DNA of 64,000 bases from Octopus sinensis (Eukaryota). Positions 6,965-58,477 of the stretch are shown piece by piece (the first letter of the stretch is position 1; the number at the start of each line of letters is the position of its first letter). The notes under the pieces were generated by a model, which saw only the letters and a list, made by a program, of their open reading frames with translations, was not told where the DNA came from and searched no databases. Both the position numbers and the translations under genes were made by a program. Where the stretch lies: NCBI RefSeq assembly GCF_006345805.1, contig NC_043011.1, positions 61,764,464-61,828,463 of the forward strand, in the 5' to 3' direction.

Positions 6965-7006
6965 CCGGATTATATTTCGACCCACGACATATCTGAAGTC
7001 CAAAGA
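6965..7006 (-). CDS. Secreted Cys-rich protein family, copy A, exon 2 (VFGLQICRGSKYNP; phase 1-1)
   Basis: ctacttatttcag|42 nt|gtaagtag on the minus strand; homologous to 21383-21439 and 46104-46142. Confidence 0.75.
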
Positions 7007-8035
7007 CTGAAATAAGTAGAAGAATATAAATAGAGAATGTTGAAAAAGTTCGAGAAATATAACAGGTCGTAATGATGAAAATTTAATCTGCAACTTGACA
7101 AATGTGTATCATACAAAATTTATACAACTTATACATATCGTTTGAAAACATGAGTCTGTAGAATTGGATGAGTGTTTAAAAGGCAATATGTTTCTAAGCT
7201 AAAAGAACGTCATCCCAGCAGTGAGTCATGAGAATATTAGATCTATTTCGCCCTTCACGAGGCTTGTCATGAACGTGCAGCCTTCTCCAACGAATTTCTT
7301 TTCTCGATATATAAGCAATCACGAATAATTGTCTCACCGGTATCGGTGGGTAAAAGCCGAACGGGGAGATTGTGGGGCAGGCGATTGAACCAGTATTAAA
7401 TTCAAGCAGAGACTTTTACGCTCAACCAAGAATTCGCTCTGCAAAAACTTGTTTAAATATAAAGCTTGAAAGGCTTGGAATATGTGTGCTGCGTACACAT
7501 ACACACAACCGAAGAACACGCGCGGAAGCTAATGCACACACGTATGTATATATACATGTATATATATATATATATATATATATAAAGCAATAAAGATTCA
7601 AGTTAATTTATATGAATTTACTTGAATATGGTACCTAACTTAGATGCACCAAAAAAAACTATACTGTTTTAACAATACAGTAATGTGGGGTGATTATAAG
7701 CGAGAAAGAAGCAACAAGAATGGATAGGTTTTTAGTACAATCGTTTCATACAAGGACAGGCTTTATTAAAAGTTGTAAAAATTACAGCATATAAACGTGT
7801 ATATATATATATATATATATATATACATATATATATATATATGCATATGTATATAATTATGGATGTGTGTAGAATTGTTTGTGTGTGTTTGTAGAATGTT
7901 TGTGTGTGTGTGTGTGAATATATACATATACACACATAATTTGTAATCTCGCAAAACATAAGCTGGTTTATAAAGTCACCTTCCTGGTACATGAGAAAAT
8001 ACAAACCTAAAATCGGGAAGAAGGTTGATGCAAAA

Positions 8036-8400
8036 TTGAAAGTTGATTAAACGGTAAAGAAAGAAAATTAGGATTACATCGTGTTTCCCAGTAGAAGGCA
8101 TAAACAAACTAGTTGTCGTAGAGGAATCCAACAGAGACGGGTGCTAATTTTGCCATACAATTTCTCAATCGGATGAGAGTGGTAGACTCCAGTTTCCCAA
8201 AAACAAATTTGACCATCTGCTTGCATTTGCTGAAAATTTCGATTCTGGAATCAAGTAGAGTGGTGGAATCTTTGTACGGTCATTCTGCTACGCAAAAGTT
8301 ACGTTACTTTAATCCATTTACATATGGCATGGGTTTCTCTACGATTCTCCACTTGATTGTATGCGGTGTACAGTTGGGCTTCAAAACATCATACCTGACT
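8036..8400 (-). mobile_element. Penelope-like GIY-YIG C-terminal relic in intron 1 of copy A
   Basis: Translates, with stops and shifts, to ...TIKWRIVEKPMPYVNGLK...SRIEIFSKCKQMVKF, resembling PLE endonuclease ends; paralog at 19200-19580. Confidence 0.6.
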
Positions 8401-8586
8401 CGCTAACTTAGTGACTATACATTCGTGAGTGTGTGTGTGTATGTGTGTGTGTGTGTGTGTGTGTCTCTCTCTCTCTCTCTCTCTCTCTCTCTCTCTCTCT
8501 GTATTTTGTAGATTAGATGGTTTCCATAAATTAAATAGGAGTATTTATGAAGATAAAAAGAACACATTTGTCTTGTAACTACTTAC

Positions 8587-8620
8587 CGAAAATGAGGAGA
8601 AAACACAGACAATATTTCAT
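8587..8620 (-). CDS. Secreted Cys-rich protein family, copy A, exon 1 (MKYCLCFLLIF, phase 1)
   Basis: ATG, a hydrophobic run and a GTAAGT donor; TATA box 62-69 nt upstream of the ATG; three further paralogous exons in the window. Confidence 0.78.
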
Positions 8621-8681
8621 CGTGGATTTTCTTTTTCCATGACTGTCCGATCATGAAATGTTCCCTCACTTGTCTCCATTT

Positions 8682-8711
8682 CTTTTATATTCAGAAATGA
8701 TGTAACAGCTG
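8682..8711 (-). promoter_or_regulatory. Copy A promoter module: CAGCTG E-box + TTACATCA + TATAAAAG
   Basis: Same order and spacing in copies B, D and, degenerate, E. Confidence 0.65.
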
Positions 8712-9439
8712 TTTCTCCTCACTGAAGCCAGCTTATATTTGCCCCATACGGTTTTCTCTAATATTTTTTTATGATTCCGTTAATGGTTTTCACGAAGTGA
8801 AATGTTGAAATATAACATATATATATATATGTATATATATGTATATATATGTGTGTGCGTGTGAGCGCACTGTGTGTGTAGTTGTGTATACATACATGTA
8901 TGGATTTATGTGCGTATAAACAATAGACAGATTTCTTTCAGACGATTTTCTTGCTGATAAACAAAGGAGAAAATGTACTACTTGGAATTCTCCAAAAAGA
9001 AACAGTGCAAAATGAACCGAATCAACCATGCTACAGCTGGGCTGTGAAATAGGGACCAGAATAAGAAAGGGACCAGAATAAGAAAGAAAGGGCAGAAGAA
9101 GAATGGTGGAGATGGCCAGAGAAAACAAGGAGCGATACATTGCCCCATCATTAAAAGATAAAGTAAGGATTGTAAATAAAATTTGCGTTGTATGTTATGA
9201 AGAACATTTGACTTTAAGGCTGAAAACAAAAGGAATAAAAGAGAGGACAAGAAGGAAATAAGCATACACACATATAAACATGTATACACAATTATATATC
9301 CACACATACATATACATACACACAAACACACACACACACATACGTATATATATAGACACATATACACATTTGTACATATGTAGCTCCATACTTGCATATA
9401 TCGCTTTCACATTTAAGTATACATAAAAAATTACACACG

Positions 9440-56244: not shown

Positions 56245-56570
56245 TGGCCCTCTATCGGTTGCGACGAATCGGATTCCAGTTGATCCGGTCAACTGAACAG
56301 CTTGCTCGTGAGATTAACGTGCAAGTGGCTGTACGCCCCACTGACACGCTCACTCCTTTACATCGTTCTCAGGAAGATTCAGCGTGACACAGAGTTTGAC
56401 ATGGATGACTCCTTGAAATACAGGCACTACTCATTTTTGCCAGCTATGTAGACTGGAGTAACGTGAAATAAAGTGTCTTGCTCAGGGACACAACAGACTT
56501 CTGGGAATCGAACTCGTGACCCTACGATTGCAAGCTGAATAACCTAAACTCTAAGCCTCGCGCCTTCACA
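56245..56570 (-). mobile_element. tRNA-derived SINE (another family)
   Basis: GGGAATCGAACTCGTGACC is the reverse complement of a B box; the body is related to 62650-62895. Confidence 0.65.
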
Positions 56571-58039
56571 GTGATTAAATACGCAATAAATTTATGCAAC
56601 GCTCTTGATAAATACTGAAATAAATTGAATCCAAAAATGTTTGAAAACAGAATTCTCAAAGATATGTTGCAGTGTCAGAATAGTGATGCCTTCATTATAA
56701 ACTTTAACAAAGGAAACGAAAAGGACAAAAGAAAATTTCCCTTTAAGAATCTTCAATATGTGGCTTTCAGAAAATATGAGTGGAAAGCACATAGACAAGT
56801 CAGCAACTAAACAACTCTGCCATAGACTGGGCAATGACGCTGTTCAAATAATATGCAGTGGAATTCAAAGAAACTTTAAGCTTGCCTCAGGCAATTTATT
56901 GGAAAAATTGTTTTCATTCGATATTACCGGGATGAGTTAGTTTGGATTCAAGGAAAGTAATTTCAATAACAGGTTCGAGTATCATATACTCTCATTCAGA
57001 TTTATAATCCAAGCAAATTATTCCTTAACATCTCAGTATATCTGCAAAATGAAAGAAGAGGGAATCTGTTCAATATCGTTAAATATTCACACATAATTGC
57101 ACAGCCAATATTCCCGAAATTCCCTCTTTCACACACCAAATTCATCCCAAACTTTTTTTACTCAAAATGCAGTTACTCATTGTATGCAAGTGTTTCCATT
57201 CAATGAAAACTACAAAATAACACCGGCATATTTATTATATTTTTATTTACATATACATGTATTTCTTCACATTTGTCTTGAAAACAGCGTTAGTATTGAT
57301 TGCTGACCGGAATATGAACTGTAATGAAGATAGAAAACGACGGTTATTAAAACATTTGTATTAAAAAAGTGCTTTATTCCAATTAAGCAAAAGGGGTTCC
57401 TTGCAGATGACTTAGTATTGCCTACCGTTCTTTTATGTGCCACGTCGCCCGCTTCCCACAGATCAATCCCTGATATTTCTAATAATTTCCTAAACATGAT
57501 TCCGAATCATATTCATACAAAACAAATATTTCACGTATTTCAGCCATCTGAATTTTTAAAAATCTATTGAAACAATATAATAAACAATTTGGATAATCAG
57601 TGCGTGTTATAAGCAATTTAAGTCAAGTTATGAGTATGTTATATGCAAATTAAGCCCAGAAAACAAACGGAAAAGAAATTCGAGAACATTTATACGAGGC
57701 AATTCTAGCGTGAAAGTTAACGAGGGAGATATCTACGGTTGTCTTGGCAATTTTTACAAAACTAAATTTCTAACACAACTAGAAAGCGCTCATGTCCAAG
57801 AGACACAGGATTCTTCTCTAAGCCGCTTATCAGATTTGTGTGGGTAGCTTTAAAGCGACCGTCATTAGTCAAACCAATAAAACAGACAGACCAAAATCAA
57901 ATGACCTGTGAAAGTAATGTATTTGTGCGAGCGCGAAGAGATGCTGAGAGGGAAGTGGGTTGAGTAAATTTAATTCTTACTCACCGGTTAAATAGAAACA
58001 TTTATGAAGATGAAGAAGATTTCTCTTTTAAGTACTTCC

Positions 58040-58076
58040 CAACAATTTGAAGAGAAACGCATAGAATATATTTCAT
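58040..58076 (-). pseudogene. Copy E, exon 1 (MKYILCVSLQIV) with donor GT mutated to GG
   Basis: GAAAATCCACGATGAAATAT context as in copies A and B; the donor reads GGAAGT; read-through meets a stop. Confidence 0.7.
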
Positions 58077-58102
58077 CGTGGATTTTCCTATTAAATCAAC
58101 AT

Positions 58103-58402
58103 TATCACCACCATCACGTGACCGACCAGTCCATCAGATATAGTTACACATTGCTGGTCACAATGCGTTCGCATTGTTTTAGCCTTCGAATGACGCCACC
58201 CCGCTGGCTAGGCGAGCAGGCCAACAGAAGAAAGAGTGGTGAAAGAGTACAGCAGGGATCACCACCATCCCCTGCCGGAGCCTCGTGGAGCTTTTAGGTG
58301 TTTTCGCTCAATAAACACTCACAACGCCCGGTCTGGGAATCAAAACCGCGATCCTACGACCGCGAGTCCGCTGCCCTAACCACTAGGCCATTGCGCCTCC
58401 AC
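58103..58402 (-). mobile_element. Full-length tRNA-derived SINE with a 10-bp TSD (AAATCAACAT), inserted in the 5'UTR of copy E
   Basis: TSD at 58093-58102 and 58403-58412; A box TGGCCTAGTGG; B box GGTTTTGATTCC. Confidence 0.9.
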
Positions 58403-58446
58403 AAATCAACATATGCCCTTCAAATATTCTCCTCCTTGTCTCTGTG

Positions 58447-58477
58447 TTTTGTATATTTAGAAATGACGTAACAACTG
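58447..58477 (-). promoter_or_regulatory. Degenerate promoter module of copy E (CAGTTG, TTACGTCA, TATACAAAA)
   Basis: Homologous to the modules of copies A, B and D. Confidence 0.55.

Follow-up and report, generated by a model that had tools for sequence, protein, structure and literature searches.

Gene organization of the locus

We analysed a 64,000-nucleotide stretch of the Octopus sinensis genome (NCBI RefSeq assembly GCF_006345805.1, contig NC_043011.1, forward-strand positions 61,764,464 to 61,828,463), hereafter the window, which carries four related copies of a gene for a small cysteine-rich protein that is predicted to be secreted. Coordinates are those of the window unless another sequence is named. 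First exons encoding MKY... start at ATGs 8620 (−), 19009 (+), 51210 (−) and 58076 (−), and we refer to these copies as A, B, D and E, respectively. A preliminary description of this DNA had recognized all four homologous first exons, which we recovered, and had read them as four multi-exon genes. We found instead one complete gene (D, the sole copy in the window that is demonstrably intact), one truncated copy (B), one copy cut by the window edge (A, exons 1 and 2 only) and one relic (E, exon 1 only).

Gene D occupies the minus strand from 51210 to 41280 and consists of five exons of 37, 39, 103, 98 and 53 nt, which were spliced by hand and then located exactly. All introns are GT...AG, the junction phases are 1-1-2-1 and the product is exactly 109 aa long (MKYFLSICLLIVVAGLQTCWSVNSMKYLGLDYCLREKYCPEAWKEYPRGDDEEDSDTFCGRLSMYIACSWKEGPWWCIKGLQFEYSALSACSMYKAKPTQAPTPKPKSR). 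The canonical splice sites and the length of 109 aa had been proposed before, but every junction is AG/GT, the 1-nt frameshift correction that was thought necessary is not needed, and one residue had been misread (EGPWWC, not EGPLWC). Exon 1 (51174–51210, −, 37 nt) encodes MKYFLSICLLIV plus 1 nt and ends at a GTAAGT donor in phase 1. Exon 2 (46104–46142, −, 39 nt; phase 1 in and out) encodes VAGLQTCWSVNSM and finishes a signal-peptide-like segment. Exon 3 (42655–42757, −, 103 nt; phase 1 in, 2 out) encodes K-YLGLDYCLREKYCPEAWKEYPRGDDEEDSDTFC-G with Cys1 to Cys3, and exon 4 (41783–41880, −, 98 nt; phase 2 in, 1 out) encodes RLSMYIACSWKEGPWWCIKGLQFEYSALSACS with Cys4 to Cys6. Exon 5 (41280–41332, −, 53 nt including TAA) adds a basic, proline-rich tail, MYKAKPTQAPTPKPKSR, that differs between species; the product also has an acidic loop, GDDEEDSD. 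About 65–95 nt 5′ of the ATG lies a core promoter-like block (51272–51306, −; GAGAAACAGCTGTTACATCAT.TCT.AATATAAAA) with an E-box, CAGCTG, and a TATA-like box. Intron 2 holds an optional micro-exon of 21 nt (45031–45051, −), AACGGATTCGTAAACGTCGAG, flanked by AG and GTTAGT.

Conservation of gene D

Comparison with Octopus bimaculoides identified a D orthologue, XP_052830461.1 (P0001; "uncharacterized protein LOC128249908 isoform X2"), with 85% amino acid identity and identical exon junctions. The D locus is collinear with positions 9237–15338 of O. bimaculoides locus L002 (CM046618.1:51,001,064-51,026,170), and its introns are 82–90% identical to their counterparts there. All D splice sites and the six domain cysteines are conserved, and the tail differs by an 8-aa indel. 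Across exons 1–4 we counted 24 differences in 279 nt, which correspond to a nonsynonymous rate (dN) of 0.07, a synonymous rate (dS) of 0.19 and a ratio (omega) of 0.36 (Fisher p = 0.026). The most plausible reading is that D is functional and subject to moderate purifying selection.

The micro-exon is also shared. Its counterpart at L002 11831–11851 keeps the AG, the GT and phase 1, and O. bimaculoides isoform X1 uses it to insert KLNRKRRE, which is the difference between X1 and isoform X2. In the window the micro-exon would insert KRIRKRRE, so that a convertase-like site, RKRR, would stand directly before the cysteine domain; N-terminal processing might therefore depend on alternative splicing. 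The RKRR itself is kept between the species, whereas the two residues that precede it differ (LN in O. bimaculoides, RI in the window). The site is not part of the major isoform.

The locus has been modelled differently in Octopus vulgaris (assembly GCA_951406725; Destanović et al. 2023, PMC10700109). The annotated protein CAI9735818.1 ("Hypothetical predicted protein"; P0004) carries exons 1 and 3 of D at 100% identity (window 51175–51210 and 42655–42757). Its gene range spans 141.6 kb; the model skips exons 2, 4 and 5 of D, includes a spurious exon (39976–40038), and further on takes in an A-like exon 2 that lies outside the window (VIGLLTCRGSKYKPG) and a dispersed retroelement open reading frame (ORF). 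The C-terminal ~200 aa match 45 proteins that are ~90% identical and scattered over many chromosomes, and this part is thus retroelement-derived. Because the model skips exons and adds retroelement sequence, we regard CAI9735818.1 as a chimera and not as the real product of D. The A-like exon 2 suggests that there may be another family member past coordinate 1 of the window.

Copies A, B and E

In A, B and D, exon 1 closes with one extra base, G, followed by GTAAGT (phase 1), as had been described for three of the four first exons; in E the corresponding letters are GGAAGT. The combination of ATGAAATAY, 8–10 codons, any base and GTAAGT occurs three times in the window, against none in 200 mononucleotide shuffles of it. 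The three second exons with GLQxC that had been reported are likewise present (A, 6965–7006, −; B, 21383–21439, +; D, 46104–46142, −), each with a pyrimidine tract and CAG acceptor and a GTAAG donor. An identical 35-nt promoter-like pattern lies ~65–95 nt before the ATG of A (8683–8717, −), B (18912–18946, +) and D, and also upstream of the O. bimaculoides gene LOC128249863; we infer that it is a candidate promoter. A, B and D are genuine paralogues and not ORFs that arose by chance. In the 5′ leader of A and B (8618–8679, −, and 18950–19011, +), an upstream ATG stands just 3′ of the TATA-like box, out of frame, and opens a short upstream ORF whose TGA overlaps the MKY ATG.

Exon 1 of A (8587–8620, −, 34 nt) encodes MKYCLCFLLIF and exon 2 (42 nt) encodes VFGLQICRGSKYNP, each followed by a GTAAGT donor in phase 1. 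Intron 2 contains a non-LTR (long terminal repeat) retrotransposon, a long interspersed nuclear element (LINE; 583–5990, −), with ORF1 at 4065–5990, an endonuclease (Exo_endo_phos) at 3535–4020, a reverse transcriptase (RVT_1) at 1727–3376 and a zf-RVT domain at 583–1638; its ORF2 is broken into three ORFs. Exons 3–5 of A were not found in the window, including positions 1–900: beyond the LINE there is only the 3′ untranslated region of the element, low-complexity DNA and (CTAT)n down to coordinate 1. If they exist, these exons lie past coordinate 1, displaced by the LINE.

Copy B starts like A, with an exon 1 (19009–19042, +, 34 nt) that encodes MKYCLCFLFII and ends at a phase-1 GTAAGT donor, and an exon 2 (57 nt) that encodes VNGLQICLGMYGVGRSNMP and ends in phase 1. 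Its 3′ half is damaged. Homology to LOC128249863 resumes only at 27590, at the TGC of CPEA, and an in-frame TAG lies just before it (27581–27583). The exon-3 remnant (27590–27639, +) encodes CPEAARNYTFSKENYC plus AT and retains a GTAAAT donor in phase 2, but its 5′ part, with the acceptor and Cys1, is gone; exon 2 ends in phase 1 and the only AG available for exon 3 gives phase 0. Exon 4 (27996–28093, +, 98 nt; RILRFMACAKKIEDLKCIKLLDGYYKFMKFCP) is open and retains its three cysteines, and B, like D, has CPEA and the C-x8-C-x8-C-x13-C spacing, as had been claimed. At the position of exon 5 (28559–28563, +), an acceptor homologous to that of D yields L and then TAA. The claim that B and D have further exons in matching phases thus held for D, whereas the phases of B do not match throughout. 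Exon 4 of B compared with its O. bimaculoides orthologue gave dN 0.24 and dS 0.13, an omega of ~1.9 that is not significantly different from 1. We also considered a rescue of B through alternative exon-2 donors, which would need a weak GTGGGA donor and an acceptor made by the in-frame TAG, and judged it unlikely.

Given the lost exon-3 acceptor, the lost Cys1 and the phase mismatch, B is probably a pseudogene. Its intron 2 contains a degenerate 5′ LINE fragment (24449–26814, +) from the family of the element in A, with 74% identity to it. It stops where exon 3 of B is truncated, which suggests that a LINE-associated deletion killed this copy. A 213-bp direct duplication (26811–27023 and 27368–27579, +; 97.7% identical, 345 bp apart) is located immediately 5′ of the exon-3 remnant.

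The two copies are related by an inverted segmental duplication (A 8964–6224 against B 18672–23927; 87–90% identity). Both arms are orthologous to LOC128249863 over the promoter, exons 1 and 2 and a portion of intron 2, and match L002 18556–23438. The inverted duplication that produced A and B affected a second family gene, orthologous to LOC128249863, either in full or only in its 5′ part. The orientation of A is that expected from the O. bimaculoides order, in which a D-type gene is followed by a B-type gene on the same strand, and B is inverted and bracketed by repeats, which suggests that B is the derived duplicate. The bracketing repeats form a 1.58-kb inverted pair (17055–18635, +, and 35551–37134, −) with 97% identity, possibly the trace of an inversion or inverted duplication that took place recently.

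The remaining copy, E, is an exon-1 fragment (58040–58076, −; MKYILCVSLQIV) with GG in place of the GT donor, and from about −15 its promoter is replaced by DNA resembling a short interspersed nuclear element (SINE). Its homology to the other copies covers only ~115 bp around exon 1, and no homologue of exons 2–5 was found downstream. E sits within ~7.3 kb (~52032–59393) made up of repeats and E itself, a stretch for which O. bimaculoides has no equivalent at the collinear site (L002 9237).

We weighed the possibility that all four copies are functional paralogous genes for secreted cysteine-rich proteins. The promoter-like block, exons 1–2 and intact GTAAGT donors common to A, B and D speak for it, as do the open exon 4 of B with all three of its cysteines and the chance that the other exons of A lie past the window edge. 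It is nevertheless very unlikely: B has lost Cys1 and the acceptor of exon 3, carries a TAG in frame and joins phase 1 to phase 0, its exon 4 has an omega of ~1.9 compared with 0.36 for D, and E lacks a donor, a promoter and downstream exons.

The family in Octopus

To define the extent of the family, we compared the window with O. bimaculoides and with protein databases. O. bimaculoides has at least four family copies within ~125 kb on CM046618.1. LOC128249908 (XP_052830461.1/XP_052830460.1), the D orthologue, carries the RefSeq name "uncharacterized protein", as do the other two annotated genes. Immediately downstream on the same strand is LOC128249863 (XP_052830364.1/XP_052830365.1), an intact gene of the B type whose isoforms are 157 and 114 aa long. 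LOC128249871 (XP_052830374.1, 101 aa; P0003) is a paralogue with 37- and 39-nt exons 1–2 and with the junction positions, phases and six-cysteine spacing of D. Beside it is a fourth copy that is not called as a gene (15218–22896 of the second O. bimaculoides locus, L001, CM046618.1), in which exons 2–4 are open with all cysteines and the exon-1 donor is mutated (GTCCAAAAGT). The three annotated genes resemble the window copies in exon layout and phases, in the MKY or MNF signal exon, in the GLQ of exon 2, in YCPEA and in the six-cysteine spacing. Besides the D orthologue, three O. bimaculoides paralogues, at 33–55% amino acid identity, retain the cysteine spacing as well. The two species differ in arrangement: in O. 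bimaculoides an intact B-type gene stands head-to-tail with the D-type gene, whereas in the window an inverted duplication has produced two B-type copies (A and B), with LINE sequence in intron 2 and a truncation in B.

The RefSeq start of LOC128249863 is placed 20 aa earlier than the family start (MEKGKRTF...), at an upstream ATG that is in frame there (L002 18856–18918); it is probably an annotation artefact. This upstream ATG is absent in D of the window and out of frame in A and B.

A six-cysteine scaffold, C-x5-C-x(16-19)-C-x8-C-x8-C-x13-C, together with CP(E/D)A following Cys2, is present in D, P0001, P0003, the O. bimaculoides B-type protein and the uncalled fourth copy; for the family as a whole the second interval is given as x19 (C-x5-C-x19-C-x8-C-x8-C-x13-C), and B of the window has no Cys1. 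In an alignment of six members, truncated B among them, the invariant columns include the G-L-Q of exon 2, C-P-x-A and five cysteines, and the sixth cysteine is absent only in B. The cysteine of exon 2 (GLQTC) is not conserved, as relatives have GLQTLW or GLQTFR, so it falls outside the scaffold, in the c-region of the predicted signal peptide. A first exon that reads M, K or N, Y or F and then a hydrophobic run, with a phase-1 GT donor, is found in A, B and D, and E departs from it at its GG donor. The full five-exon, 1-1-2-1 structure is found in D and breaks down in B at the exon 2/3 junction.

An exhaustive HMMER search of 1.84 billion representative proteins, with a profile of two RefSeq isoforms and translations of individual window exons, returned four proteins: P0001, P0003, P0004 and a repeat-rich artefact. 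The real matches are all from Octopus, and a word-indexed profile search added only one more database protein, P0006. Among the proteins searched, the family is restricted to Octopus. These results agree with the earlier proposal of a lineage-specific family with a signal-like exon pair, a disulfide scaffold and birth-and-death clustering. The same proposal had called the cluster hidden, which is partly right: the O. bimaculoides orthologues are already RefSeq models, but in O. vulgaris the locus is mis-modelled as the 141.6-kb chimera. The genes are thus already predicted in O. bimaculoides, as three unnamed RefSeq entries, and mis-annotated in O. vulgaris, and they form an uncharacterised member of a familiar class. 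Within the papers that were searched, the loci, accessions and family peptide strings returned nothing relevant.

Taken together, we put at roughly 80% the probability that the window is part of a tandem and inverted birth-and-death cluster of an octopus-restricted family, in which D is intact, B is disrupted and E is a fragment. Several points weigh against this reading. Support for the D product comes entirely from sequence comparison and structure models; no protein identical to spliced D was found in a 15-billion-protein collection; near the D stop there is no canonical AATAAA, the first ATTAAA being 383 nt downstream within a repeat; and the omega of D rests on 24 substitutions. The signal peptide was called by reading the N-terminus by eye, and the N-terminal extensions of the RefSeq models (MIGCRCIGKFT- and MEKGKRTF...), if they are real starts, would bury the hydrophobic segment. 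The structure models described below were built on a 6-row alignment and are of moderate confidence.

A rival account holds that the exons are not coding at all but are conserved non-coding or repeat-derived segments, or part of a long non-coding RNA, with chance open frames. The exons are tiny (34–103 nt, the range given originally), the model was missed by the O. vulgaris annotation, the databases contain no protein identical to the spliced product, and LINE and SINE DNA is abundant in the window. We consider this account extremely unlikely. Five exons, their splice sites and phases and six cysteines are conserved with O. bimaculoides, paralogues at 33–55% identity keep the cysteine spacing, the omega of D is below 1 and the micro-exon distinguishes two isoforms among the RefSeq models. 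Moreover, we found no dispersed copies of the family exons, which match only members of the cluster, unlike the retroelement part of P0004, which gave its 45 matches in the same database. An origin of the exons from a transposable element, raised at the outset as a way in which the prediction could be wrong, is not what these matches indicate.

Predicted fold and comparison with known families

The products of the family appear to be preproteins of ~100–110 aa in which exon 5 supplies a short, variable, basic tail. A short, hydrophobic signal peptide at the N-terminus would come from exons 1 and 2 (MKYFLSICLLIVVAGLQTCWS, before VNS...). MK, a 14-residue hydrophobic run and QTCWS before V, where positions −3 and −1 are small, would form a cleavable signal peptide that directs entry into the endoplasmic reticulum and is cut near the boundary of CWS and VN. 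With this putative cleavage site, the predicted mature D protein has 88 aa, a mass of 10.2 kDa and a pI of 7.7.

Exons 3 and 4 are predicted to encode an all-alpha-helical domain of ~60 residues with six cysteines and the motif YCPEAW. Of the structural checks that had been called for, AlphaFold and Foldseek were run on two O. bimaculoides members. AlphaFold2 models of P0001 and P0003 had predicted local distance difference test (pLDDT) values of 73.7 and 78.9, respectively, with cores of 80–91, and both were all-alpha with the same helix layout. Foldseek found no match with E < 1 for either model (best E = 3.7 and 7.3); the sole odorant-binding protein (OBP) match was 3v2l (E = 8.1, probability 0.02), and there was no match to saposins or to crustacean hyperglycaemic hormone (CHH). 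No Pfam family matched D, P0001 or the B domain at E <= 10; the six members together gave only one RGM_N match, below threshold (E = 0.014), and the family profile had no hits among PDB sequences. The family is therefore without a named relative in Pfam, PDB or Foldseek, as the preliminary description had supposed.

In general architecture the family resembles insect OBPs and chemosensory proteins (CSPs), saposin-like proteins, arthropod CHH and ion transport peptide (ITP), and molluscan pheromones. These likewise have a signal peptide, an all-alpha domain of ~60–90 aa with three disulfides (predicted here) and short phase-1 signal exons, and this generic class likewise shows clustering with pseudogenes and fast evolution. 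The resemblance ends there: none of OBP/CSP, saposin-like proteins, CHH/ITP and pheromones shows a sequence or fold match to the window family, whose cysteine spacing is its own.

In the mechanism that we propose for the secreted, disulfide-bonded product of D, three disulfides would lock a small helical bundle in the endoplasmic reticulum, and a mature protein of ~10 kDa would be secreted to act as an extracellular ligand or binding protein or in defence. It is most likely an extracellular ligand or a defence protein. Carrier, venom or reproductive functions are also candidates, and the venom, antimicrobial, pheromone and mucus peptide families with which the preliminary description compared the cluster provide no more than conjectural roles. 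As a candidate identity we also considered Octo-SAP, a sperm attractant of ~11 kDa from Octopus. Where the optional 21-nt micro-exon is included, the RKRR convertase site that it inserts would trim the N-terminus.

The RKRR site also raises the question of whether the product is a signalling molecule of the processed-prohormone or neuropeptide type and not a structural, defence or venom protein, with RKRR and the basic tail (...KPKSR, ...RQRHRG) serving as convertase and carboxypeptidase signals. In keeping with this, RKRR in the micro-exon is conserved between species while the two preceding residues differ, the C-termini are basic, with P0003 ending in Arg-Gly, and small helical six-cysteine hormones occur in arthropods (CHH/ITP and eclosion hormone). 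The cysteine spacing of those hormones, however, differs from that of the window family, there is no similarity to neuropeptide families in Pfam or PDB, the major isoform lacks RKRR, and fast evolution with pseudogenisation is more typical of defence, reproductive and venom families. We therefore think this unlikely. A related and bolder proposal, which we offer only tentatively and do not favour, is that the family is a new all-alpha three-disulfide fold born in octopods that serves as an extracellular signal (a pheromone, a hormone or a chemosensory carrier), with N-terminal maturation switched by inclusion of the RKRR micro-exon.

With D read as an intact member of an octopus-restricted family, the analysis provides a corrected model, 109 aa from five micro- to small exons, for a locus annotated as a 141.6-kb retroelement chimera. 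Tying this model to three unnamed O. bimaculoides RefSeq genes defines a small octopus-restricted family of helical disulfide proteins that are predicted to be secreted, a well-supported orphan family that should not surprise specialists. Taxon-restricted secreted families are routinely missed by annotation pipelines because their exons are tiny, and they are candidates for cephalopod-specific biology, such as venom and saliva, skin and sucker secretions, reproduction and signalling. The locus also shows LINE insertion and inverted duplication making and killing copies within about one species divergence.

Other repeats in the window

Other fragments of non-LTR elements with reverse transcriptase or zf-RVT sequence are present at 31478–34116 (+), 49170–49904 (−) and 11654–12163 (+), one of them inside intron 1 of D. 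The window also contains long microsatellites, for example at 46469–47290 and 20450–21060.

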